A stretch of 64,000 nt of DNA from Oculina patagonica (GCF_052425735.1 NC_135764.1:12400001-12464000); one strand, 5' to 3'. Numbered from the stretch's first letter, positions 37,763 through 56,246 are shown. Notes: generated by a model from the sequence alone, not told the origin. Numbers and translations are program-made.

Positions 37763-40700
37763 CTTGACTGCAGTTATACCCAAAGTACTCATCATTGCAG
37801 AAGCAAGACTGGTTTTCGTAAGTCATCAAGTCATAGTTACAGGTACCATGACCACTGCACAGCATCTCGGGTAAGCAAATACTACAATCCAGTGGTTGTC
37901 TTGTCCAGCCCTGATCACAGAAACAGCTCCCATTGAAGTCGCAGCGCCCGTGCCCTGAGCAGCGAACGTCTGGTCTGCACACCGAACAGTTCTGTCCGCT
38001 GTAGTAGCTGAGACAATCGCACGTGCCATTTCGCAAGCACTGACCATGCCCAGAACAGAACGTGGTCGGGTCACATCTGGAACATCTCCCATAGGGCTCG
38101 AACCACTGACGTTTCCATCCTTTGTAGCAGGAACACGTGTAACTCCCTTGGTTGTCAATGCAGTATGAATTCTCAACACAAGTGTGCAAACCAACGGAAC
38201 ACTCGTCAATGTTAGTGCAGTTTTGTCCATCGCCAGTCCAGCCTGGGTTACACTTGCATTTATAAAAACCAAGAGTGTTGTAGCAAGTGGCGTGTTCCCC
38301 GCACGGAATAGAGTCAACTCTACATTCGTCTATGTCTGAGCATTGAAACCCGTTTCCAGAGTAGCCCGTTATGCAGCTACAGTTATATCCACCAATGTAA
38401 TTATGACAAGACGCTCTTGGATGGCACTGATTGAGATCACTGCTCGAACACTCATCTAAATCTTCGCATAACAGAGTTCTGTTTCGGTGATATCCGTCCA
38501 AACAGGCACAGACAAAACCTCCTACAGTGTTTACACAGAAAGAGTTATGGGTGCAGTTTGCAGTTTTTAAAGAGCACTCATCGACATCGGAGCAGTTTTG
38601 TATGCCATTTCCAGTAAATCCTGATTTGCATTCACAATTGAAGGATCCCACTGTGTTATAACAAGTAGCATTGAGATGGCAAGTGTTATTTGCAAGGCAT
38701 TCATCTGTATCGTGGCAATCCCATTCTCCGTCGTTACGTTCATATCCCTGTAGACATACGCACTCGTACGACCCTGCTGTGTTCTTGCAGGTTGTTCTGT
38801 TTGTACAGTTATGGACATACTTGCTTTGATTACTGACACTAGTTTTCAAGCTTATGTTCACTGCAAGATACCAAGGAATGGAGATGACAGTTGTGACGTT
38901 CTTTCCGGTTTGAACAACGTCTACAATAGCTTGAATACAATCTACTTGCTCATTGTTAGCTTCCTCGCAGGCACAAACCAAAGTAGTGTTGTCAACATTA
39001 CTTCCATTGTTTGAAACGTTACGATAAACACATGTTTCTACATTGGAACAGACACCTGGTTTACATTCTTCCAGTCTACCTTCAACCGTCTGTTTGATAG
39101 TCCCTTCACATTCGTCAATTTCGAAACAAGCATCCGCGCTCTGAAGGAACCCTGATCGGCACTTGCACTCGAATCCTCCAATGAGATTGACACAGTCAGC
39201 ATTAGTATCACAAGAACCATACATCTGTGGACTGATGCACTCATTAATGTCCATGCAAGCCGTGCCGTTTCTATCTTCAGTGTACCCCTCTGGGCACACA
39301 CAGTAATGCTCCATCCCAACCGCAATACAAGTCATGTTTTCATTGCACGTGTCGTTACCGGATTGACAAGGGTTCACAGCGTCACACGATGAGTTGTCAA
39401 CAGCATCACATTTGCATTCATAACCGCCAACCAAATTTTGACATACTGGGGCTGATAGTGGACAGTTGAACATGCCCCACTTGCATTCATCTATATCCTC
39501 ACACTTTCGTCCAGCGTTAGAGAAGCTTCCGATACAAGCGCAAAGACTTCGTGCAGTTACATTTGCATTTGCTTTACTTGCATTGTTCGTGTCATTACTA
39601 CACTGATACTCCGCGCAAACTCTACCTTTGTCTTCAAATCCTTGCAAACATTCGCAAGTAAAGCTCCCGTTGGTATTCGAACAGGTCGCGAAAGTATCAC
39701 AGTCGTCCAAGCCAAGGTTGCATTCGTCGAAGTCTTGGCATTCGTCGTTTTCCTGGCCGCTCAATGTCCAGCCTTCTTTACAGACACATGAATAGTTCCC
39801 AGGAACATTTCTACATATCTGGTTTGCACCGCAAACAGTACCATTAGCACACTCGTCTACATCAGTGCAATAAAACCCATCACCTTGCCATCCCTGTGTA
39901 CAAGTACATTCGAAACCACCAATACTGTTGCTGCAAATCGCATTAGCTTCGCCTTTGTAGGTAGAACAGTTGTGTATCTCTTCTGTGCATTCATCCACAT
40001 CAATACACAATAAGCTGGTGTTTGAGGGAATTTTTTCCACGATTTCTGGAATTGAAGCATTTTCTATTTCTCGCCATCCTTGCTTGCAAACGCAGGTGTA
40101 ATTCCCTTCAGTGTTTAAACAGTCTTCGTTTTCATAGCAAGAATGCGTATTTAGCTCGCATTCATTGACATCTGTACAGTTGTAACCATTTCCGGACCAC
40201 CCGCTCTTGCACACGCATTGATATCCTCCTGGTAGATCGATACATTTTGAATTGACACTGCAGTTATGGCTTCCTTCTTTGCATTCATCTACATTCTCAC
40301 AGAAAATACCATTTCCTGCCCAGCCTGGGTTGCAGTAGCATTCAAATGTTCCGTTGGACTCAATACATCTTGCATGTATTGAACAAATATCGCTCCCATT
40401 GAAACAGTTTCCTCTTTTTACACAAGAGAACCCATCTCCATAAAACCCGCTTTTACACTGACACTGCACAAACGGCAATGACTTGTTTTGGACGATGCAG
40501 AAGGCATTTTCATCACAAATGTTTAAGTGTGACTCCGACTCACAACCTCCACAGTCTAAGCCATCAAAATCACAACGCTTTGTGTCACATGCTTGGTCGC
40601 AGGTTCCGTCATTAACAGATGTTACGGAGCAATCCGCCGAACATATGCAATCACCCCCATCAAAGCCACAAATTCTGTTGTTACATTCAATGTCACACTG

Positions 40701-43700
40701 CCCGTTACCGATAGAACTTTTTGGACAGGTCTTCGAGGAACACAAACAGTCCATGCCATCGTAATCGCAAGATTCCACAAAGCACTCGACATTGCATATT
40801 CCATCTCCTAACGTGGCATTCCTGCAATCCGGAGCACACTGACAATCACTGCCGTCAAATGAACATTCCTCTACGTCACATTGCGATTGACAGGTGCCAT
40901 CGGCAACCATACCCAGACGACACCCTGGACTACACTCTTTAACAACTGGTTTAGGGCAGTCACCGTTATCGAAGTCACAGGCCTGTACATTGCAGGCAGA
41001 ATCGCAAACACCATCACCTCGAAAACTTGGAAGGCAACCTTCAAAGCACAGCTCTGTTGTTAAAGCAGAAGGCTTACAATCTCCGCCATCGAAGTTACAA
41101 GCAGACACGTTACACGATATTTCACAAAACCCGTTAGCAATCATTGGAGGAGAACACGCCTTTGGACAGTTCTCTCCTGTTACTTTTTGGGCACAGTCTC
41201 CATAGTCATACAAGCAGTCGGCAACGTTACACTCTTCATCACACATGCCGTTACCTTGAAGATGTTTACTGCAAGTGCAATTTGAAACTAACGCACAGTC
41301 TCCTTTGTCCAGACCGCATAATACCGTATTGCACTGGTGATCACAAAAACCATCTGCCAACATTTTTGGACGGCATCCAGGACTGCATTCTTCCTCAACG
41401 CAATCACCACCATCAAACTTGCAAACGGTGTTGTTACACATCTGATCACACGACCCGTCTCCAAGCCACGAATTTGGACAAATGCAAACATTCTGGCAGT
41501 CTCCTTTGTCGCTTAAGCACTTAGGTATGTTGCAATCTGGATCGCAAACACCATCACCAATCCAACTTTCCGGACATAACGGAGTGCATAGCTTCACCAT
41601 TGAACAGTCATCTCCATCCCAACCAAGGTCACAAACGCAAACGCCTTCGATGCAAGTACCATGACTAGAACATCGGTTTGGACAGGTGTTGATTTGACAT
41701 TTTTTACCCGTATAGGCCAGATCACATTTGCAGCTTCCGTTAGCGAAGCACACTCCGTGTCCAGAACAGGAGGTTAAGGAATCACATCCAGGTGCTGTCT
41801 GCAGTGTCGGGTCATAGCGACTAAGCCTGCTAAAATCCATGCTTTCACGTGGTATTTGAAGATGAAAATATGGAACTTCGGATACACTCACATTTTCAAC
41901 GAGTTCAAACTCCAATAATCGGGCTTCCGTTAATATTTCAAGGCCAAGTCGAAAGTTGCTGTCGTTTTGCAGTGAAGCAGTATTAATTTCAGCGATATCA
42001 TAGTCCGTACCACCTCTTCCGAACGGAGATACGTTATATACTTCAAGCTCAATTAGTTTTTGTGCTGTTAGATAGGTCATCTTTTCGATTGACGTGTTCT
42101 GAGCTGTTAGAAAACCAACATATTTAACAATTCGGCGCCTGTACTCTCTGTAAACTAGTGTGGAATGAAGATCAGATGAGTTGACTATTTCCAGCACAAC
42201 CAGTTTGGCAAGAGAATACACGCTGAGTGATCCACGCGAGATTACGATGTACTTCTCCCCAGTTATCTTCTGTAAGTGGAATAAGACATTAAGAGAACTA
42301 ACCGAATAAATGTCATGAATACTTTCCGGCTCTAATACGAACGCGGATTGGTTAGAATAGTATGATTTGCATTCTCCATTGTCGTAGTGACATGCTTCTG
42401 TATTACAGGCTTGATCACACATGTCATTGTTGAAATGTACTATTTGCGAACAGCCAGGGCTACATGGAATCAGGTACCACAAGGGATCTTTGTAAACCCC
42501 GTCTTGTGCAACACTTACACTCACAAAATTCGGCAGTATGGGCTTTTCATTTGCCAAAGCTGTTCCGATACTCTGCCCACTCTGAACACTGGTAATGTTG
42601 TGAGGTGTAAAATGAGACACAGTTACAATAAAACCCACCCACTTGCTTTTAGGCCAACCAGTGATCTCGATACTGTCACCCTTTATTTTGACGTTTCCAG
42701 GAATCGGAGAATTGATAACTTGCAATTCATTAACAATCAGATCAAGCCAGTGCGTCAATCTAAAACAGCCCTCTAGCAATGCTCCAGTGCATGGTTCCTT
42801 GATGTTCCAGTTACATCTACCCGATTCAAGACACCTTTCTCTGCTCCCGGTGCCTTTACACGAAGACAACCCAGTGTTTTCAGATGTTATGGATCGAAAA
42901 AGACCACAGAAGCCATCTATTCCAGCCCTGTTTTGTGAAATGCGTAGGATTCTAGGGAACAGTCCATGAAATTTTGCATTTGTGGGACTAACGCACTTTG
43001 GATAATTTGGTGGTTTTGGAATGGTTAAAGGTGTATTGAAGGCTACCTGTAAAGTTCCGATATGTGCAATGTTTGTCAGTCGAATTTCTGCTTCTGTGAC
43101 TTGTAACCATTCCGATAAGGTGCGAAGACTATCATTTTGTTTAGTCACGTAAACGCAGCCCCTTTGTGAACAATCTTTCCCATAAAAGCCTGGAAGACAA
43201 AAACATTGACCAGTTTTGCAAATTCCTTTACCACTACATAGGCGACCTTTGTTCACTGGACATGCCTTTGCACAAGTTTCATGGAACCACTTCGCTGGAC
43301 TGCATAGAGCTGGTGAGCTTGGTCCTAAGGGTGTACCTTCAGTGCATATGGGGCTTTCTTCATAAAACTGGGAACCACACCAACCACAATTTGAGTTGGA
43401 AACACACTGAGAGCATTTCTGATTCAGGTGACACGTTTTCGGGCATGGCGTTCTGTAGAAAACCTCGTCTTGCGCACAGACAGCACCCGTGGTGTTTGAA
43501 AGACATTTCTGAGAGCCTTCGCACCAAAGGCAGCTTCCTGTGGTTCCACCGAAAAGACAAGATTGACAAGACGTGTGGATGTTGCAAACGCTTTCCTTAA
43601 ATGTTTTGTTCTGATACCTCGTTATATTGAGCTCCGACCACAAAACCTTCGTGAAATAGGGTAGACAAAAATCTTTTACTGGGGAAACGAAGCCTTCTAA

Positions 43701-46700
43701 GTTGGATGTCAAGTTTAATAAGGTGGTAATGGTAATCCTTGGGTGCCAGTTTCCATAGCTGATCAGCGGCTTGGAAAGATTGTAGAATGCCGAGTATCTG
43801 CTTTTCCAGCTGTATTGAATCGGATTTAGCTCTGGCGGGCAATAATAATCATGTATAATGTTTGAAAGCTTCTCATTTTCAGAAGAGTTAGTAATCAGCA
43901 CTCCAAGCATGTACCCATCGACAGCACTGTTAATGGTTGACGTTGGAAGCCTCTCTTTACAAAAGGTGGTTGCTTCCTTTGATGTATTCCAATTGCTGAT
44001 AAAGTCATCTGTGCTGAGAAGGACAGCCGTAATCCAGGTGAAAGTTTGCACTGGCTTTTGGATGTGAGGGTTAAATGTGAAGCTTTCATTTCCAACACTT
44101 CGCCCTAAACTCTCCATTTCCGACGAAAGTACTCCTGCCAAAATAAAATCAATTTCGATGTGGGATTCAGCGAAGCTGTAATGCCCTTTAAGCTTTGTTA
44201 ACATTCTGTCGTCTGTGTTGAGTTCTTGTGATACAGAGTAGGGCACAGGATAAAACAACGATAAATACTTCCAAATCTTGTTAAGGTGTAACTTTCTGTT
44301 ACCAGCCTCTGCTGACTGCGAGAGAGACCACGCCAGCGATGCAATTTGAGTTAACGATTTTTCCGGAAAAATCCTCTCTATCGCCCAGATGTCGCAGTAC
44401 AGGTGATCACATGGGGTACTTGAAATGTTGACAACAAATGATTTACTGCTGCTACTGACAAGGTTGCTTGCTGTTACATTCACCACGAACTGACCAGATC
44501 GTGGGAAGTAATGCGATACTGTTTCAGTGACATTGTGAAGCGATGTATTGTCACCAAAGTCAACAGTGAAGGAAACATTTGTCCCAATGGCTGATGTTCG
44601 TAGGATTACAGCACGGCAAGCTCTTTGATCTCCACTGACATTCAGCCTGATATTTGAGACCGGCACTTGAACGATCACTACTTCAGTAGCTGTGCTATTT
44701 CTGACGTTATTCTTAGCGTCTATATCCACGACGTACACACCAGGCGAGGTAAAATTAAGTGACGTGAAACCATATTGACTAAAAGCTCCTAAAAAGCTAT
44801 ACTTGTACTGAACGTTTGTCCCTGAGAGCGCAAACGAAGAGAATGAAACCTCTTCTCCAACTGCTTTTGGGCTGTCGGATATTATTGCCAAACCTTTAAT
44901 GGGTTTTTCGCAGAAAAGACCATCGCCAATCCACCAACGTCTGCACACACATGTAAACGATTGGCCATCAGGTCCATAGCGAAGGCAAGTAGCATTGGGA
45001 TGGCAGTTGTGTTCACCAGTTGCACACTTCCCCTTTTTAATAATTTCGTCAAGGGCAGCTACCTTATCTGCTCTGTCTTTAAGAGCCTTTTCGAGGTTGG
45101 CAGAAGCACGTAGCGCTTCTTGTCGTGCTGCATCCCGCGCGTTTCTCTTCAACTGTTCTTCTTCTTTTGCCCTTCCGAGTTCCCTCTCTTTTGTCCTAAC
45201 ACGAGTTCGCTGGTCGCTAAGATTTCTCTGAAGCTTCATTTTGTCCCTTTCCTTTCGTCTTTTTTCGTCAGTGAGAGCATCCCTGCGGTAGATTGATCGT
45301 TTGCCAAACCATCCACTAACGGTTTTTATAACCTTTCCTGCGAGGTTTCGGAGGCCTCGGGCTATCTCAGATGCTATTTTGTGGGCAATGTTAGCAATTC
45401 TGTTTACCACGTCTCTAAGTGTCCTCGAAACGTTTTTAAAAATTCTCTTCGTTTCTTTCAAGACACTGTCGAGGCGTATGACTTTTGCCACAGCTCCTAT
45501 CCAAGCTTTTCCCGTTTCAGCAGCCTTCCTGCCTGCTTGCTCTGCTGCCTTTGATGCTTGTTCAACGGTTTTCTGTGCTGCTTCTACAGCCTTCTTAGCC
45601 GCCTCTCGTGCCGCTCTCGCTGCCTCAGCCGCAGCTTTAGCAGCACGTTCTGCGGCATTAGCTAAAGCTTTCTCTGCATCGATAAGGTTATTGAGGATTT
45701 TTCCAATATCTTTAACAAGATTTGCGCCAAGTTTGAATCCCTTTTTTAGCAGGTTTTTTATCAGTTCTCCGGCATTACCGGCGAAATTTAAAAGTCCATC
45801 TGCAAGTGCACGCAAAAGCTGAGCAGGAGTCTTAAGGAAAAGCTCTTTAATTAAGGCAGGCGCTTCTTTCTTGACGAGGCTAACAACAAGTGCTGGAATT
45901 CTGTCAGGCCTAGCATCTTTCGTGTTGAATGTTAACAGTGGAAGCTTTATGTTAACTCCCATAAAAGAAAATGAAACTTTCAATGAACTTCTTCCCGGAA
46001 ATGAAATCTTTAAGTCGCAGTTAAAGCCGGTGCTCAAAACAATTCTTCCAACGTCTTGACCGAAAACACTTATTTTGCCAATGTCAATTCGCAGGTGAAT
46101 GTCAATGCTCACCTGTGCTCGAACGTTAAAGGATATGCCACGTCTAATAAGTTCAATGCTTATTTGTGAACCCATAAACAGAGATGTAGCCTGTATAACT
46201 GATCTGGATGGAGAGTCCTTGATGTAGAGTCGGGAATCGAGCAGTCGCACACCTAAAAGACGCAGATCTACTTTTGCATCTAAAACGAACACAAGGCCCG
46301 GACCATAAGCAGCTTTAACCAATCCACCGAACTCAACGACATCTTGAAAATTGAATTTCAACTGTCCAACAACGGTTATTGTGTCTTTGGTTACACGTAC
46401 CTCGCCACTTATAAGGGGCACATTACCAAGTTTGACTTGGCCTTTTGCAGAGATTGTCAGAAGATTTGACGAATCTTCCAACTTGATATTTGCTTTGGCA
46501 TTAAAACTTATTTCCACCAGGTTTGTTATACCAGCGTCCAGTCGTAAGGACAGACCAGCATTACCGAAATTCTTCACTCGAACTGCGACATCTGTAGAAA
46601 GAAGGAGTAAATTCGAGGAGGCTATCAGTAAAGCATCATCTCCAGTTTCCTTTACGGGATATGGCCAGATTTCTTTGTTCTGCTTTAACTCGTTCGGTGT

Positions 46701-49700
46701 AGACGCTGCAAATTTTAGCAAAGGCCATCTGAAAGGACCAATGTTAAAAGCAATGTCCAAAACACGGTACTTGAGAGGAACGATTTGCAACAGCCACTTT
46801 GGTTCAAACGTTTTCATAAAATTCATCCAGCCAACAAGGAACCTTTTACCGTCTATTGGAGGGACGTCCAATTTAAGTCTCCTACCGCCAGTATACTTAG
46901 GTAACTGAAGCATGGTCATGTCATTTTTGTGAGACAGTTTCAAAACGAGTAACGTACTGTTAGCAGCTTTTAAGTCTTCCAGGGATAGCAGGTAGTTTCT
47001 TTCTGTATAATACCTCAAAAGGCCAACGAGAAGGGAGGCAATTGTGCTAAAATCTTTGAATTCAGGTCTTCGATGATATATTGTCGCCTGGGCCTTAACA
47101 TCAATAAGTGTCGCATATTTTATGGAAAAGGGAGCAGCAAATATCGGAATTGGCCAGTAACCCACGATTATGAAGAAACAGTCTTTGCAGACTATGTGTG
47201 TTTGCATTTCCTCCGCGTTTATAAGTAAAGGGTTTGTCTTTGGAAGACGTGACAAGAGTATAACGAACTTCAGATCCCATAGGTATACTTCAGCGTCAAT
47301 GTCTACAAAGGGTACCCCAAATGCTGACCCGATTGTGAATCGCCGTAACGAAATGGCTAACAAATCTCCTGTGGGTGAAACTGGTATGGCGACGTCCACT
47401 GACTCATCATTTTGAACTTGGAGACTGAACGTTAATGGGCCGTTCTCAGCGACTGAAAAGGCTACGGTTATTTCTTTCGGGAATTCTGGGCTCTTGAATC
47501 GTTCCATACCACTTGGTAGGTTGTCAATGTTACACCCAATCCTATTTAAGGCACCGATGATATCGGGAGGAGGCCAAATGGGAATGTTCTGTTTCAGTAG
47601 ATTGGAAACAAAAGGGATATTTTTGAAAAACTGTCGCATGATTGGCAGCGTCAGTGGAATGCACAATTTGTCTAATCCCTGAACATCAATGATAGCTGAA
47701 AAGCCGTCTTTTGTGTAAGCAAGCGAAGGGAGACTAAGTCTCACGTAAGAATCCTTCTGACAGAGCCAAGTAAAATCGCAAACGTACTCTTCTTCTACTT
47801 TGTTGCAGGGTATCAGCTCGTCCAGAATTGGTATAGTCTTGAGCTTGATTGCTAATCCTGTCTTCTCTGTTATAGAGATATCCATCTGTAGAGTGTCCTT
47901 GAAGACTTTGAATGGCAGCAGCTTATTAAGCGTATCGAATCCCGAAACGTCAAGGGATATCTCAAGTTCAGGCTCCTGTGGTGTGCTAAATACGATTTTG
48001 GGATCATAAAACTTTATTGTTAAATGGCAATCTAGTCCAGCGAGTTTGAGGTCAACATCAGCGTCAAGGAGTTTTTCCTTTAATGTAACAATAGCCAAAC
48101 GTGGTCTTACAGTTATCAATCCTTGAAGATCACTGAAGTGCTGTTCCAGCGGGATGCCCGTGAAGGATGCCTTGATGCCAGCTGTGAGCTCCCAGTCCTT
48201 GTTTTGCTTAAAACCGAGTTCCAAGTATTGAACACTAAGACTCGCTTTGAAAACGTTTGACGGGTCAGCCATGGGTAGCGGGAAACTAAAACCAACGTCG
48301 AAATCTTGAAGATCACATCGGATATTTGCACTGAGAACATTAAATCGAGGTTTGCTAAACGTAATGTTTAGGCTATTTAGAGTCACCTTTTTGAAGTTCA
48401 AGAATTCGTCTGGGACACTTTTTAGCAATTGTTCTCCACCAATCAGGCTTGCCAAGTCATACATACTCAACGGCTGGTGTCCGAGGTTCGTTATTTCTAA
48501 ACGTACAAAGTCCTTGAAAACGGACAGAACTGTTGGAACCACGGCTTTGAAAAGCTGTATCTCGACATAAATCGTAGGTGTGACAATTTGTTTGGCAGCA
48601 TGAAAGGGATTTGTAGCGAAGAGGCTGACGCGGATATGTCGAATAGTTATTCCCAAGGGAAGCCAGACGTCGGTAAGATTTGCTTCAAACTCGCACGTTA
48701 TGTTGAATATGTGAAATTGAGGGTTGGGAATGAACGAGGCTGTAAACTTCTTCAGCATGAATTTTTCGGCTTTTGAAAAAATCTTATCTGGAAAAAGCGA
48801 CTTTAGATCAAAACCACCACCAGTCAATCCAACGATGTTTGCTGCTGAGAGTTGATTTTCTTGATGTGAAAGAATGTGAAGTTTCCACGCCTGAGACGGG
48901 AATTGTGGCATTGTAAGGATACCGCGGGCCTGGATGATATTATCTCCTTTTCCAACCGTGATAAGGCATGTCAGTGTTCCAGCTACATTGACTTGGACGG
49001 CTGTCTTAACGCTAAGGTCAGCAGTTATGTTCTCTATCTTCAGCCAATTATCGACAAGAATTACTTGGTTTGGAAGAGAAAACTTCAAAGCAAAGCCTTG
49101 TACCTGCAGCTTTATCAAAGGAGGTTGTAATTCTAAGTTTAAGAACTTCAGTGAGATCTTTAACAAACGAAACGCTGGTGGAAAAAGGTCCGGTAAATCG
49201 AACCCACCAATCAGTAACTGGCCTAACTCTGGCAATGTTAGGTCTGGAAAACTTTGGAATCCAATCTTCATTTCAATTAAGTGTGGTAGAGGTGGTGGAA
49301 AGGGTATTCGGAAAGAAACTGGTAGGGCCTTTAGGACGAATGTACCGGATAGAGCTGCGTGAAAGCTGTCTCGGACGTTGAGATCCAGTGTAATGTTCTG
49401 AAATGTTAGTGGAAAGCCTTTCAGATTCCAGCGCTTTAGCGCAGTTGCTGTTAAATCTAATGAAATCATACGTGCCGAACGAGGCTCGAAATGTGCTTCA
49501 AGTGGCCATACTCGTACGTTTCCAATGAAGTCCGAAATTGGTGTTAGCATGCCAGATGGTATTAATTTCCCAACCATCGGAAGTACAGCGATTTTGGAAA
49601 GATTAAAAGTGACTGCACTCTTCAGTTTTAAAATAATCACAGACCGGGGGGAATCGGGTATGTTGCATTCCAGTGGAAGCACAAGGCGTTGCTCGTTATC

Positions 49701-52475
49701 CGACAGTTCAAGATTGCCAGTTATGACAAGGTTGTAAGAGGGTATATCGTTGAGATCTTTAACGCGCAGGTTCATGGTAGGTGCTATAAGAGAACAGCAG
49801 GACTTGAAAAAAGACCAAGCGTTTGATATCTGTAGTTCAAGGGAAAACGAATGCAACGATTCTAAATTTTTCGAGAGCTCTACTTCCGCCAACTTTACTA
49901 AAGACGCACCAATAGCATTCATGTCAAGAAGACTGGCGTCTGGCACACTCTTCAATTGTGGGACCATCTTTTGCAAAGCATCCTTCACCAGGCGTTCCAG
50001 GTCAAAGGCATTCATGGGCTTTACAAGACGCAAGAGGTGACCAGCAGATGAGTTTGTTAATTCGAGTTCCAAGTTTGTAGTTCCTAATAAAAGAAATCCC
50101 CTTAAGCTAAACAACTGAGGTGTCATAACGGCTGTGACATTCGAAATTTCAAGAGCTCCAATTCCACCAAGGTCCCACGATGTGCTGCATACAGCGATAA
50201 ACTCAGTGATTTCGAATGCTGTCAACCTTTCATCAAAAGTTATCTGTAGCTTTTGAAGAATTAACTCTGGAAGATATGACCCAAGCATCGTTGGAAATTT
50301 GCTTCTCGTCAGAATGCCAATAAGTTGCTTGAATAAAACACGAGGAGTGTCATGTTCAGGGAGGCTAATGGTAAGATTTCGTTGTTTTGATAAAGGAACA
50401 ACCATCTCAAAAGGTATGTGTACACTGCCCTCTACCAAAACGATCATTCCTCTGATCAACATGTCGAAGGACCCTTGAACGTTGACCTCGATCAAAAACG
50501 ACACATTTTCAACGCCGAAAAAGTCATCAAGAAGTTCCCATGAATACTTTGGGAGGGCACCCATAAATGTTACCTTTTCAAGTAAAAGATCACTTGACAA
50601 ATGGAACAAAGTTTTTTCAAGGGTAAAACCAGGTACGATTGCGAGTTTGGTTCTCCGCAGACCAGTTAAAGTTTCGTGAAGTGTTTCGCTAGCACTCCCA
50701 AAGAATGTACGATAAACGACCCTGATAAACGGCAGAACACCAAACATTTCCATTCGTCTCGAAAGCTCTATGACGTGGCCTCCGCTAGATGGTGGCCATT
50801 CAATTTCACAAGGTAAGCTGAAATTTCCAAGCATTATTTCACCGGTAACTCGGGTGCGATTGAATGTGTAAATCACTGTCATATTTCCAAGATAAAAGAA
50901 CGGAAAGTTCCATTTTGTTCTTGACGGTATTTCAACCCGAAAGGCTGTTAATAGGAAAGAACCAGTTAAACTCGAAGGAAACTGGATCTTCAACTTTTTA
51001 ACCAGGAAGTCTGTTAGTAGAGTCTTCAGAAAGGATGGGAAAACATTACTTAGTCCTCCCAGTTTTAAAATGCTGTTCAAATCAGCCTGTATCGTCTTTC
51101 CAGCTTGAAGCGATAAGGATAAGGCTTCGACTTTTGTTGGAATTTCGATCACAAAAGGAAATTCGAGGAATATTGGATTCCCGATCACAACTGTTCCAAA
51201 AACCTCTGCTTTGATTTCTGCGAGACGAGATCCTGGGAGAACAGCTACTTTGAAGCCTAACGTCGAATTCAACAATTTTGTCGGAATTGATGCTCCGTCG
51301 AGAACGTTCCATTCTGTCGGAATTCCAATCAAGATGACCATACTGGCTAGACTTAACTTTGGTCTCAAGCTGTAGCTAATTTTGAACAGGTAAAGCCGAA
51401 ATTCAAATGATGATAGATTCAATCGCATAAAGGCTGTGTCTGGTCGACGCTCTTTTCTTTCTTCAACACATGATAGAAGACTGTCGATAGAAATTGATGT
51501 ATTTCCGTTCTTAGCGTCTTTCATGGCATCTAAGCTCAGGAACCGTTTGGTGTTTTTCAGCATAGTAACCGATAGCTGTTGTCCACAGATGTCGATGGTG
51601 GCTTCGAATGTGTTACGAGGTTCCGTCAGTTCTAATGTGGCATTTCTTATAGTCACTTTGCCTAGAACTAAAAATGGTTTTGTCGAAATAGTCGTGACAT
51701 TGACTATTGAGATATTGGAAAGCCCAGGTGCCACGCGTAGGAAAAACTGCGGTACTTTGATGTTTTGTGAGAAGTTACCGATTGCTTCTAAAGTATTTCT
51801 ATCCATGTGTGAAGAAAACAACGGTACCAGCGAGCTGAAGGTGACAATGGCATTCTTGTCAGCACCGCTTATTTCCAAAACATCGTCTGGGCTTTCGGGA
51901 AAGTCGATTTCAATGGGCAGTCCTGGAATGCTCAAATTGGAGGCAACTTGATTAATCGCCGCGATAAAACCTTTGGCTTTCACTTTAAATGTGTAAGGAA
52001 GAAAACCTAGTTGAACAATCAGTTTAGGCTCAACGACTTTGAACTGAAATTTGTTCAAGGCATCCCATCCAGGGATACTGAACATCATATCAATCGATGA
52101 TAGGTTTCCATCATCAAAAGACAGTGTGAAAACATCAATGGCGAAACCAAAGTTTCCAACCCCAACCAATTGAAAAGAGGGCAATGAACCATTGACGCCT
52201 ACCTGTTTGGTGAATCTGTCAGCAAAGTCATATATATCAGGGACTGGGAAGTTCTGGTTGCTTGGTAACTGTATGCTTCCACTTTTGTTCAAAGGCCATG
52301 GAAACTGCACAGAGATGTTTAGGCTTCCAATTTTGACGTCAGCATGGTGTAGCCCGGAGCTTTCGTTCCAAATGTTGACAAGCTCGATGTTTGCTTTAAG
52401 CAAGACTTGCTCGACTTCCAGCAGAGAGGAAAACTGCCTTTCACCAGTGGAATAACAGCTAATAACGCACCATAG
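37763..52475 (-). CDS. Giant multidomain secreted protein, 14,713-nt exon (beta-repeat region, coiled coil, EGF, PKD, PGLYRP2-N-like, PSI, LysM, M23-like, LNR x11, Ca-EGF array)
   Basis: Uninterrupted ~4,900-codon frame. Acceptor tttacag ends at 52476 and is followed by LWCVISCYS, a plausible end of a signal peptide; donor G|gttag at 37762. Domains were recognised from Cys spacing and motifs. The ATG exon was not found. Confidence 0.92.
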
Positions 52476-53039
52476 CTGTAAATTTGAAACCAATATTCTA
52501 TTAGTCTATCGAGTAGGCTTAATCATATTCGAATAAACAATCATTTAAGAAAAACCACTTCTAATTATAATTTAAAATGTGTTGTGTACAGTTAACAGTG
52601 TGATCTCTGCGATGCAGAGTATGTCGTCTATACTAGCTAGCATTTACGCCAACGTATTGATGAAAACAGGTATTTAATAATTGGGAAACACGGCAATAAT
52701 AATAAGCATGTCAAAGTACTTTGTGACAACTCCGCAGCAGTAACCTAATTAATACCATCGGCGACCTTCCCAGTACCTTTTCCGTTCTCAAGAAATGGGA
52801 CGGATAACTGGACTACTTTATTCCTGAAATGCTATTCATTAGAAAAAAGAGGCCAACCCTCAACACGCAATCGGATTCCATCCTCACGCGAAACTATTTG
52901 TTTAGCCAAATGTAAATTCTTTATCATCTCACACCTTTCACCGCATATATCAGACTGTTCGATTATATCTTTCTATTTTGTAACTTGTCATGGCGACATC
53001 CAAACGTTGCGCAGAACTCTTATCGCTAATTTTTATTCT

Positions 53040-53420
53040 CAATCCTCGGACGTACAAGGGGGAGGGGTGGATGCCCCCCCCCCCCCCATAAGGTTTTTCC
53101 AAATTTTGAAAAAATGATTTACTCTACAATGCTGAAACTTTCAGTAGCTGTTCATTCATCGTTTGCGGAAATTTTAATATGTCAACCATGTGTCCATGAT
53201 ATTTGATGTTGCCATGGCAACGTCACAAATATAAGCAGGTCTTGCCAAAAATCGTCATTTTTAACAATTTTCTTTTTTTTTCTTTTTTTTTGAAACAGAA
53301 GTGCAAGATTTGTTTCTTTTTAGATAAGTAAGGATAAGTTTGGTTGTGACGATGACAATTACCAAAATTTGGTGATTTGTAACGCTTATTTTCCTTTTTT
53401 CTGCGATTTTTCAATAACAC
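53040..53420. repeat. MITE-like dispersed repeat, same family as 1-190
   Basis: Reverse-complement match to the start of the window. Confidence 0.65.
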
Positions 53421-54430
53421 CCGAGCTCTGCTCAATTTAGTGACGACTGCAAATTTGCTGCCTTCTATAATTTATTACTAGCGGACATCTCAAAGAAGAC
53501 AGCCTCACTCCAATGGGTTCAGGCATCACGCCTGTGACTTGCGATCGGCAATTTTCAATCCATTCTGTTTGTTTGCTTCTCTTTTCTTTTTCAAAGTGCG
53601 TTGATCATAGTCCTAATTATGATTAATAACAGCGAAAAAGGTTATCATTAGGTAGGTTTTGAGCTTCATATATGCTTCGCGTGTAATTGCATTTTCTCAA
53701 AATACATTTAAGGTCAGTTGAATCTTATTTTTATATCTCAATTTTTCTAACATTCTTTGTTTTTAAATGTCAAAATTCAGGATGACAGGTTAAAAATGGC
53801 GGACTTTTCAGTAAATTGTATGGCGCCACTTCGCATGATATGAAGTTAACTTGCGAAAGAAAACTTTTGGGGGAAGCAAAGTTTGGTTAGTGCATTTGTC
53901 TTTTCTAAAAAAAGAAATTGTCGTAGAATCCGAGTAACAAACACTAACAGTAAAATTCTAACAGCCAAGGTTTCATTCAGTCACCAAAATAAACACTAGC
54001 TTTAACTCTATTAATGCATGTGCACGTGCCATCGAGCATGTTATACTGCGGTAAAATCTAACTTTTTAATTTGCCGCATTACCGGGGTAACAGCCGAACT
54101 GACAATAAAACGCTAAAAGCCACGGTCGCACTCAAAACACTACCATATGGTATGAGCCCTAATATTGACAATATAACAAAAATCCACCAAATACATTGCG
54201 AAGCTAATAATGTACGCGAAAGTGGTATTATTCGGTAAACACCTAACTGGCTCGTATATTTAATGCGGCTATTAATTTCTCGCGAAGCTTTTCATAGACA
54301 CCCATGCCCAAATTGTTATTAAATATTTTTCACGGAAAAAGAAAACTCAATTGAATCTACTTTTATATTGTACATATTTCTTAACATTTCTGTTCAATAA
54401 GTATAAAAGTGCCAAAAACTTATTTAAAGG

Positions 54431-54463
54431 CCAAACGTTTCGGGCTTAGCTCTTCATCAGTGG
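54431..54463 (-). ncRNA. Minimal hammerhead ribozyme motif (lone Penelope-type pLTR remnant)
   Basis: Minus strand CCA-CTGATGA-AGAGC-taa-GCCC-GAAA-CGTT-TGG: stem I CCA/TGG, palindromic ACGT, one mismatch in stem II. Confidence 0.65.
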
Positions 54464-56246
54464 TAAACGTTGCCATAAACAACACGACAGAACTAATATT
54501 GAAATGAAATGTTCAAAACCCAGTGTGTATAATCCCATAAAGCAGAAATCGTTTCCTTTACTCGGAAAAATTAAAACAAACAAAATAAACCAAGAAGAAA
54601 AATAAAAACAAGGCAAAGTATCCATAAGTTATTCCCAGTTCTAAATATTGCACAGCTTTATACATTGACTTTTATTTTGCTTTAATAGTTTTGCTATCCT
54701 CTCCCACACGGTAACGTTAATAAATGAGACGAAACAATCATTACAAGTTAATTACAACAATAACGGAAAGGTGGGATATAATTCTGATCAAGTCTTACAG
54801 TATATGGATTACTTTAACAAGGCATAGCTTTTGCACACATACCAAACACACCAATGATTGGATCCAAAGCGCCATCTTTAGGCACCAAACACTGGGTGCA
54901 GCTCCCGAAAGATGTCAGACTGGGAACTGGATTTTGTAGAAGCTCTTTAGCCCTCAGTGACAATTAAATACTCCACTCTCGCCCCAATAAAAGCTTACAC
55001 CATCTTTGTAATTTTGAGGCTTTGCTGCTGAGTATAGATATCCGGCATAGTTTGGTAACGTTTTTAAAGGGATGCAGTGCATGCACCTACACACGTTTTG
55101 TCTTTGTTTACCAGTATTTGATTTCCAATACGCGAAAAAATGTTTTGCCGCGCCAAGATATTGTTGCCGATATAACGATGTACTTTGTTTTCATCTGATA
55201 AACTAAAAGCATTTAAGAATCGTTTGTACTCGGTTAAGATTCCTTGACAGATGAAATCAAGTCAATATTACAGCACGCAAGGCTTAATTATATATGGCAG
55301 AATGTTAGAAAGTAAATCAAAGCGATATGCGCTCAAAAGGAAGGTAAACAAATCACGCAGTTTAAAGGTGTTCATGTGTGACTATTCAGTCTTCCAGTAT
55401 TTAAAGTTAAAACGACACCAAGTATCAGCTAATATTAGCGTTTTGAAGAATTTTTTAAAAGGCCATATAACTCTTGAAGAACGTCCTTGAAGATCAAAGG
55501 ATTGCCAATATGTGATACTTTTAGCACTTGGACAAAAATAGACCTTAAGTCACAGAAAGGACGAGATCCATGAAGATATGAAGAATGTTGCCTAAATAAG
55601 TCTTTAAAGTGATACCTCATCTAGAAGACCACATATAATAAAAGGTAAACTGTCTTGTAGCTAGAGAACTGCTGGTATGTCAGATGCTGTTTGCAATGAC
55701 AATCAGTTATCCGATATGACTAAAAAGTGCGCGTAAGCTAGCGAGAAGCTTAACTTATTTATTGCTGACCATACCTGGAGACCATAAGATTTACAGAAAA
55801 AACTGGAATTGCAGATTACATTTTGTTCACCATAAAATCATTTGACAATCGCTTTTAACTTAATTAGAAATGACCCTGAGCCGAGCACGGCAAGATAAAC
55901 AATTTACATTGTTTGCAAAAGTCAGCCTTTAACCTTATTATAGGAAATTAACGATACATGTTCTAAAAGCGAATTTTTAAAAATTCGCGTTAATTTTATT
56001 TATGTAAGCACTTTTACTATAAGCATCTAACCAAAACTTTTCTTAAACTCGCGTTAATTAAATTATGCGTAAATTTTGTTCGCGTTGTTAAAATGCTTCG
56101 TTACATTCCTTCAATAAGGTATTTAAAGTTAAGTTCCCATGCATGAGCACTTGAATGGGCTGCATGTGCACGTGTATTATACATTATGCACTGTACTTTT
56201 CATAAACATTGACATGCTGTCTTTTTATTTTTAGGCGGTTGAAGAA

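Follow-up and report, generated by a model that had tools for sequence, protein, structure and literature searches.

What is a long, cysteine-poor stretch rich in amphipathic strands doing at the head of a coral protein whose other half is built of disulfide-rich modules, and where did it come from? The question is raised by a 64,000-nucleotide piece of the Oculina patagonica genome (GCF_052425735.1 NC_135764.1:12400001-12464000; hereafter the window), which encodes this region on its minus strand at positions 45900-52475. A reading made from the DNA alone (the sequence-only reading) had described an intronless array of recurring units and had proposed a beta-groove of the AsmA/TamB/VPS13 kind or a relation to DUF6603 proteins, with a possible bacterial origin. 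Residues are numbered here from position 52475 on the minus strand, so that the region corresponds to residues 1-2192. Our analysis shows that it is real, conserved coding sequence: in a stony coral, it supplies the first ~2,190 residues of a secreted protein of mosaic build.

Family databases did not recognise the region. In Pfam, a threshold as loose as E<=10 still returned no family for residues 1-2198; the NCBIfam and PADLOC scans were empty or showed only coiled-coil noise on the tails, and a search of the PDB by sequence found nothing. A word-based search recovered 12 close relatives at 59-78% identity and no others, one cluster of which contains XP_020608725.1 of the stony coral Orbicella faveolata. 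We then used residues 1000-2192 as the query of an exhaustive profile search against 1.84 billion representative proteins, which returned 158 proteins at E<=1e-3, of which 70 also passed E<=1e-10. The non-coral matches are about 150 distant relatives, proteins of about 1,500-2,600 residues, and all that carry a taxon label are bacterial. The animal relatives are coral orthologues only, in keeping with the bacterial origin raised by the sequence-only reading. Named members include Calothrix sp. NIES-4071 BAZ08367.1, whose annotation is 'LamG domain-containing protein' alone, and proteins of Bacteroidales and Spirochaetota metagenome-assembled genomes. When one genome per species was scanned, 53 loci were placed in at least 12 phyla (Myxococcota, Cyanobacteriota, Bacteroidota, Thermodesulfobacteriota, Gemmatimonadota, Bacillota, Chloroflexota, Actinomycetota, Verrucomicrobiota, Elusimicrobiota, Pseudomonadota and Spirochaetota). 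Beyond LamG-type inserts, the bacterial members have no match in Pfam and none in NCBIfam or PADLOC, nor do they have a solved relative.

The best-conserved part of the shared sequence is module X (residues 1620-1934; 46674..47618, minus strand), which is mixed alpha/beta and is modelled at a predicted local distance difference test score (pLDDT) of about 90. Pro, Gly and aromatics account for most of its conserved residues, and nothing among them looks like a catalytic motif. Module Y (residues 1948-2185; 45921..46634, minus strand) follows as a predicted open beta-meander of about 18 long (8-23 residues) amphipathic antiparallel strands. About 150 proteins match the profile at positions ~637-920 (X) and ~1000-1185 (Y), with E-values down to 1e-31, and the order of X then Y is constant. 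In the reverse test, a profile of the X module scored the coral protein at 293 bits. A LamG or pentraxin domain lies between X and Y in 11 of the 21 members scanned and is thus optional in the family; Pfam finds no such insert in the coral protein, and there is none in the subgroup nearest the coral clade.

Outside the core, coral residues ~1070-1380 align, at domain E-values of 3e-7 to 7e-3, with residues ~150-450 in several bacterial members and with residues 1559-1865 in the bacterial member P0042, although this support is weaker than that for the core. Just beyond the studied region, a Lys/Ala/Glu-rich, amphipathic helical tail (residues 2193-2480; 45036..45899, minus strand) shows a weak likeness to the tails at the C-terminus of bacterial members; its best E-value is 5e-9 in a ~130-sequence database, and the match, being of low complexity, needs care. 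The bacterial-derived part is probably longer than the region itself and extends into the tail, which has a dibasic site at about residue 2400. The shared parts are also alike in length (1,500-2,600 residues), whereas the coral protein adds a signal peptide and about 2,700 residues of animal modules. We consider it almost certain that the coral region is homologous along its length to this unnamed family of giant bacterial proteins.

In the coral, the region belongs to a gene of two exons. The minus strand from 52493 to 37758 is a single open frame of 4,911 codons, as found by open reading frame scan and translation, and nearly all of it is exon 2 (37758..52475, minus strand; 4,905 codons, 14.7 kb). 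This giant exon carries everything after the first 11 residues, in the order signal-peptide end, bacterial-type region, helical tail, EGF, PKD, eleven LNR and an array of EGF-Ca. Exon 1 (54843..54875, minus strand) supplies the ATG and the first 11 signal-peptide residues, MALWIQSLVCL, followed by the splice donor GTATGT; its product resembles MVIWIQALVYL, the N-terminus of the Orbicella orthologue. Between them lies an intron of 2,367 nt (52476..54842, minus strand), within the part coding for the signal peptide, with a polypyrimidine tract and an acceptor, ...tttacag, that ends at 52476. The claim that there are no introns therefore holds for 45900-52475 itself but not for the gene, which has this one 5' intron. 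Joined in phase, the two exons give the signal peptide MALWIQSLVCLLWCVISCYS, then TGERQFSS, and the N-terminus of the Orbicella faveolata orthologue, MVIWIQALVYLFLSITGCYS, is close to it. Since the bacterial-type region directly follows the signal peptide, it should be extracellular; sequons are frequent over residues 1-1400 (2-6 per 200 residues), which fits. A Pfam scan of the rest of the protein found EGF, PKD, eleven LNR and many EGF-Ca domains, including teneurin-type EGF. Within residues 2561-3600, the matches at E<=1 were PKD, EGF, LNR and a single faint internalin-domain match (E 0.17).

Two side observations concern the 5' end of the gene. On the intron side of the acceptor (52483-52508, minus strand), an in-frame stop followed by TNRILVSN aligns with MTNTILVSF, the called start of the orthologue P0003, with TAG at the position of the ATG of P0003. 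It may be what is left of an earlier uninterrupted start whose place a new 5' exon has taken, or an artefact of the start call in the orthologue. The 5' intron also contains, at ~53065-53095 (minus strand), a G13 run and, after it, a C-rich stretch, probably a simple repeat.

Several lines of evidence bear on whether the coral gene is in use. The same chromosome carries a second paralogue, also intact, at a distance of 16 Mb (G000:C7:28449042-28452617, plus strand; locus L002); the two are 69% identical over residues 1000-2192, and the open frame of this paralogue runs for 4,982 codons. In another assembly, a copy that is 47% identical continues into PKD/EGF/LNR modules in the same way. Contigs from three runs, which we guess to be RNA, cover the exon to 52415 and are absent from 52416-52800, a weak indication of transcription. 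The intact 14.7-kb frames in two paralogues and in several species are stronger grounds than the run data for concluding that the gene is in use.

The composition of the region agrees with the description given by the sequence-only reading. Cysteine makes up 0-2% of each 200-residue block of residues 1-2200, compared to 9-17.5% in the LNR/EGF half, and the hydrophobic residues ILVFMW make up 35-43% of the same blocks. Strong two-face hydrophobic alternation occurs in 15.3% of 9-residue windows, compared to 5.7 +/- 1.0% in shuffled sequences (maximum 8.8%). This is 2.7 times the shuffled level, and there is no such excess in the three later parts of the protein.

The recurring unit of ~120 residues, a helix, a proline and then strands, was also borne out. 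The motifs that had been quoted for it lie at residues 476, 1088, 1217 and 1344, and similar helix-Pro-strand starts are found at 216, 718, 829 and 962. Over residues 718-1344, where all neighbouring starts were identified, the spacing is 111-133 residues, indicating a period near 125 residues; the gaps 216-476 and 476-718 are each about two units long. In profile self-comparison, residues 440-630 align with residues 688-871 (49863..51158, minus strand, the best internal pair) at an offset of about 248 residues, with an hhalign probability of 92-95% and an E-value of 2e-8. A weaker pair, residues 933-1042 with 186-294 (probability 59%), is offset by 3 x 249 residues. BLASTP self-comparison detected no internal similarity, and the repeats needed profiles to be seen. 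We describe residues ~84-1470 (48066..52226, minus strand) as an N-terminal array of ~125-residue units, each consisting of an amphipathic helix, a proline and about 5-6 amphipathic strands. This description draws on motif spacing, profile self-matches, the weak bacterial matches of residues ~1070-1380, and a low-confidence model: AlphaFold with eight orthologues gave a pLDDT of 37 for residues 1-1200, which makes the model usable only as a hint of about 5-6 strands and a helix per unit.

It should also be noted that a contig from one run (X3, depth 2.8) skips 996 nt within 50766-51763, exactly 332 codons and in frame. The ends of the skip, TC..TG, are not those of a standard intron, and it may reflect misassembly across the ~125/250-residue repeats, or a shorter allele or relative.

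The fold of the core was modelled with much better confidence than that of the array. With 136 aligned sequences, AlphaFold modelled residues 1600-2192 at a pLDDT of 88.9 and a predicted template modelling score of 0.72, with X as a mixed alpha/beta module and Y as ~18 strands. Across the confident strands, the mean difference in hydrophobicity between the two faces is 3.19, compared to 1.61 +/- 0.24 in shuffled sequences (maximum 2.31 of 500). The comparisons with known folds bear chiefly on Y and hardly on X.

Among solved structures, outer-membrane barrels matched the core model with Z-scores of 9-11.7 but with a root-mean-square deviation (rmsd) of 14-18 Å, and the template modelling score (TM) by target of VDAC is 0.28; a closed barrel fits poorly on these values. 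The ApoB-100 beta-belt (9coo_A) matched with Z 11.4 and an rmsd of 8.9 Å over 230 residues, the lowest rmsd among the top 10 solved-structure matches. The sheets of OspA (Z 8.3, 4.9 Å over 170 residues) and of the CPAP TCP domain (Z 8.9, 7.2 Å over 148 residues) matched as well. Because the barrels fit poorly and open sheets fit better, we read the Y sheet as open rather than closed. In the ESM Atlas, the best overall shape matches were TamB clusters (TM 0.43-0.45, 352-373 residues at 6.3-6.5 Å), followed by AsmA/DUF748/YhdP (TM 0.42), with LptD at 0.35-0.38 and DUF6603 at 0.37. In the AlphaFold-DB clusters, DUF6603 proteins accounted for 8 of the 19 best matches (E 1e-7 to 2e-5, probability 1.0, TM 0.19-0.26). 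Near the top of the Swiss-Prot models there were barrels only, with ATG2 and vitellogenin far lower, and a viral fold library gave nothing telling. From these models, the core is very probably an open beta-meander of antiparallel strands, hydrophobic on one side and polar on the other. We would describe its predicted fold as one of the sort found lining lipid grooves and belts, with no single known family standing out clearly.

What might such a fold do outside the cell? Most likely, the long amphipathic sheets would form a groove- or belt-like hydrophobic surface, as in the grooves of TamB/AsmA or the belt of ApoB-100; this is the weakest step of the proposal. Exposed extracellularly, the surface would bind lipid, membrane or another hydrophobic surface, and the animal modules would anchor or target the bacterial-type region. 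Overall, we see about an even chance that corals have captured a whole bacterial giant protein made of amphipathic beta-sheets, whose function is to bind hydrophobic surfaces outside cells. The more specific idea, that the modelled sheets form a continuous lipid-holding groove or belt, is possible but rather doubtful. More tentative still is a complete bacterial-derived device for holding lipid extracellularly, in which a groove or ApoB-like belt and the amphipathic helices are tethered by EGF, LNR and PKD modules. If this were true, the device could carry or extract lipids outside cells, for example at the microbe interface, in mucus or between tissue layers, and its design for extracellular lipid transport would be one without a known parallel in animals, the unrelated vitellogenin/ApoB family apart. 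Like the coral region, the ApoB-100 belt is extracellular and consists of an open amphipathic beta-sheet followed by amphipathic helices. However, in contrast to ApoB-100 and the large lipid transfer proteins, the coral protein has no Vitellogenin_N domain and no sequence relation to them, and the likeness is in the shape of one module.

A number of results weigh against the capture of a bacterial protein that binds hydrophobic surfaces. On the side of function, the likeness to a groove comes from comparison scores, all with TM <0.5; TamB, YhdP and VPS13 are absent from the 30 best Swiss-Prot models; the alternating pattern would also fit ordinary beta-sandwiches; and the model of residues 1-1200, where most of the repeats lie, was poor, as noted above. 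On the side of origin, most of the ~150 distant matches carry no taxon label, and the tree described below is unrooted, so that its topology alone is compatible with ancient vertical descent. The bacterial members have no signal peptide or N-terminal anchor (their N-termini, judged by eye, are not hydrophobic), and their gene neighbourhoods show no conserved operon. In the coral, transcription is hinted at by runs whose RNA status is a guess. Two other findings that the sequence-only reading had named in advance as counting against its proposal, discrete Ig-like sandwiches and a broad set of animal homologues, were both absent.

The best-surviving alternative concerns ancestry, and is compatible with any reading of the function: the region may be a divergent member, by descent, of DUF6603 or of the AsmA/RBG superfamily. 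Shape is what speaks for it. The prominence of DUF6603 among the AlphaFold-DB clusters (Foldseek probability 1.0 for eight cluster representatives) is joined by weak language-model searches (scores 0.76-0.83), in which DUF6603 was the only named family to recur, and by the TM values of TamB/AsmA (0.42-0.45) and DUF6603 (0.37) in the ESM Atlas. DUF6603 proteins of actinobacteria and fungi are likewise large and uncharacterised. Sequence comparison did not follow. The DUF6603 model PF20248 (27-bit cut-off) has no match in the coral protein, even at E<=10, and none in the coral genome or in five bacterial genomes that bear the family described here. When three alignments of the region were compared to eight actinobacterial DUF6603 domains, the hhalign probabilities were 4.6%, 20% and 0.1%, and TM scores are low throughout (0.19-0.37 for DUF6603). 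While shape and language-model likeness thus stood from the proposed relation to DUF6603, the hidden Markov model (HMM) and profile-profile searches were negative.

The AsmA/RBG superfamily fared similarly. Residues 1-2198 have no AsmA, TamB, DUF748, YhdP or Chorein_N match in Pfam at E<=10, nor do these profiles match any of the bacterial members scanned. An RBG unit consists of five antiparallel strands that form a U and end in a loop, and RBG proteins start with an N-terminal chorein domain (PMC12066543). The coral region shares with the AsmA-like/RBG bridges (TamB, YhdP, VPS13, ATG2) a long, helix-punctuated array of amphipathic antiparallel strands, and the size of the RBG unit is near that of the coral repeat, for which the low-confidence model suggests about 5-6 strands. 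It differs from them in lacking sequence or HMM similarity; it has no chorein scoop or N-terminal membrane anchor, since a cleavable signal peptide leads directly into the region; and it is extracellular, whereas the bridges lie between two membranes. Of the proposed AsmA/TamB/VPS13 groove, then, an open amphipathic meander with TamB-like and ApoB-like shape was predicted, but there was no HMM match; TamB/AsmA models gave the best shape matches in the ESM Atlas, all at TM <0.5, and none of TamB, YhdP and VPS13 was among the 30 best Swiss-Prot models. The region may work like RBG or DUF6603 proteins, but we do not file it as a member of either family, and descent from one of them seems a doubtful prospect.

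As a side observation on DUF6603 itself, one actinobacterial genome (G011) encodes four separate DUF6603 proteins of 1,130-1,500 residues (loci L059, L064, L065 and L066), whereas 196 of 201 genomes sampled from the same phylum lack any such protein. DUF6603 has a patchy distribution, with expansions inside lineages.

Somewhat less probable, and in our view unlikely, is that the region is a purely structural or adhesive extracellular scaffold, such as a rigid rod or matrix part whose hydrophobic faces are packed together, with no role for lipid. Its fusion to the matrix and adhesion modules EGF-Ca, PKD, LNR and teneurin-type EGF would suit such a scaffold, as would its many sequons. The prevalence of Pro, Gly and aromatics among conserved residues points to a structural role, and parts of Y give a good superposition with the single-layer sheets of OspA and the CPAP TCP domain (rmsd 4.9-7.2 Å). 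However, the strands have a strongly hydrophobic face, which the polar single-layer sheets lack, the closest shapes overall are sheets that contact lipid, and the bacterial counterparts of the region have no matrix modules. A surface that binds lipid, membrane or another hydrophobic partner remains our preferred reading.

The genomic setting of the bacterial genes brings in a further alternative. A co-directional upstream gene is common but varied, encoding eCIS_core, PLD, metallo-beta-lactamase, radical SAM or ABC transporter proteins. Six loci (in Myxococcota, Thermodesulfobacteriota, Pseudomonadota and Gemmatimonadota) share one upstream family of 560-715 residues, encoded on the same strand and 2-70 nt upstream, and the two upstream proteins scanned (L006:5001-6938 and L007:1378-3522) have an N-terminal eCIS_core (DUF4157) domain. 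The eCIS_core gene is a possible partner or effector gene of the giant genes that follow it, and the bacterial setting as a whole hints at an effector-like or modular system.

This setting would be consistent with a membrane-inserting or pore-forming toxin-like module, the bacterial family being large toxins released by a non-classical route. LamG would bind a receptor on the target cell, the amphipathic hairpins of Y would enter its membrane, and corals would have co-opted a secreted effector of attack or defence. The ~18 amphipathic strands of Y, at 8-23 residues, are of bilayer-spanning length, and many of the structure matches are outer-membrane barrels (Z 9-11.7). About half of the members scanned (11/21) have the LamG/pentraxin insert, some loci have the co-directional eCIS_core (DUF4157), PLD or metallo-beta-lactamase-fold gene, and the bacterial members have no signal peptide; several large toxins also lack one. 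Against this, the barrels superpose badly (rmsd 14-18 Å; VDAC TM by target 0.28), no toxin family was matched in Pfam or NCBIfam, and the upstream partners differ and are often absent. The model is of a monomer and says nothing on oligomers. We regard a toxin as improbable, and as less so than only one other alternative, which concerns the origin of the region.

How, then, did a bacterial-type protein come to be encoded in a coral? A tree of the X module groups the eight coral rows in one clade, with a support of 100 and a stem length of 1.58. This clade adjoins (support 89) a bacterial subgroup that includes a Leptospirales genome and a Bacteroidales/Spirochaetota cluster, and the subgroup and the coral copies are alike in their uninterrupted X-Y layout. 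As the tree is unrooted, the case for transfer rests mainly on distribution: the family occurs in many bacterial phyla and, among labelled eukaryotic matches, in corals only, the exhaustive search of representative proteins having found no labelled eukaryotic relative outside corals. We consider transfer from bacteria to coral very probable. The event would be old, because the GC content of the region matches that of the rest of the gene and because the fusion is common to divergent coral copies. In the scenario that we infer, an ancestor of these corals acquired a whole gene of the family from a bacterium; the gene would later have gained a signal peptide with a 5' intron, and it now shares an exon with EGF, PKD, LNR and EGF-Ca. 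The weakest alternative, that there was no such transfer but either an ancient family, inherited vertically and since lost from almost all eukaryotes, or a passage in the direction of the bacteria, starting in coral, could appeal to the very long coral stem, the rootless tree, the equal GC content and the in-frame fusion with animal modules, but is very improbable in view of the absence of non-coral eukaryotes from the labelled matches, the deep divergence of the bacterial members across at least 12 phyla and the bacterial nearest neighbours of the coral clade with the same layout.

Elsewhere in the window, a dip in GC content in the bin 32001-34000 is due to a run of 500 N at 32904-33403, an assembly gap or masked stretch outside the studied region.

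Our data define a large family of proteins, with members in at least 12 bacterial phyla, for which there is no Pfam, NCBIfam or PADLOC model and no solved relative, and place a whole member of it in a conserved, duplicated and secreted coral gene. To our knowledge, few bacterium-to-animal transfers exceed 2,000 residues, and in still fewer is the protein joined to adhesion modules of animal type. Lipid binding by the sheets, if real, would give corals an extracellular counterpart of the bridge-type lipid carriers, which would bear on symbiosis, mucus and defence. If the region is instead toxin-like, it would be a candidate effector in immunity or venom. On both readings, the coral gene provides the first functional context for the bacterial family, and the family in turn provides a deep alignment for structural work on the coral protein.

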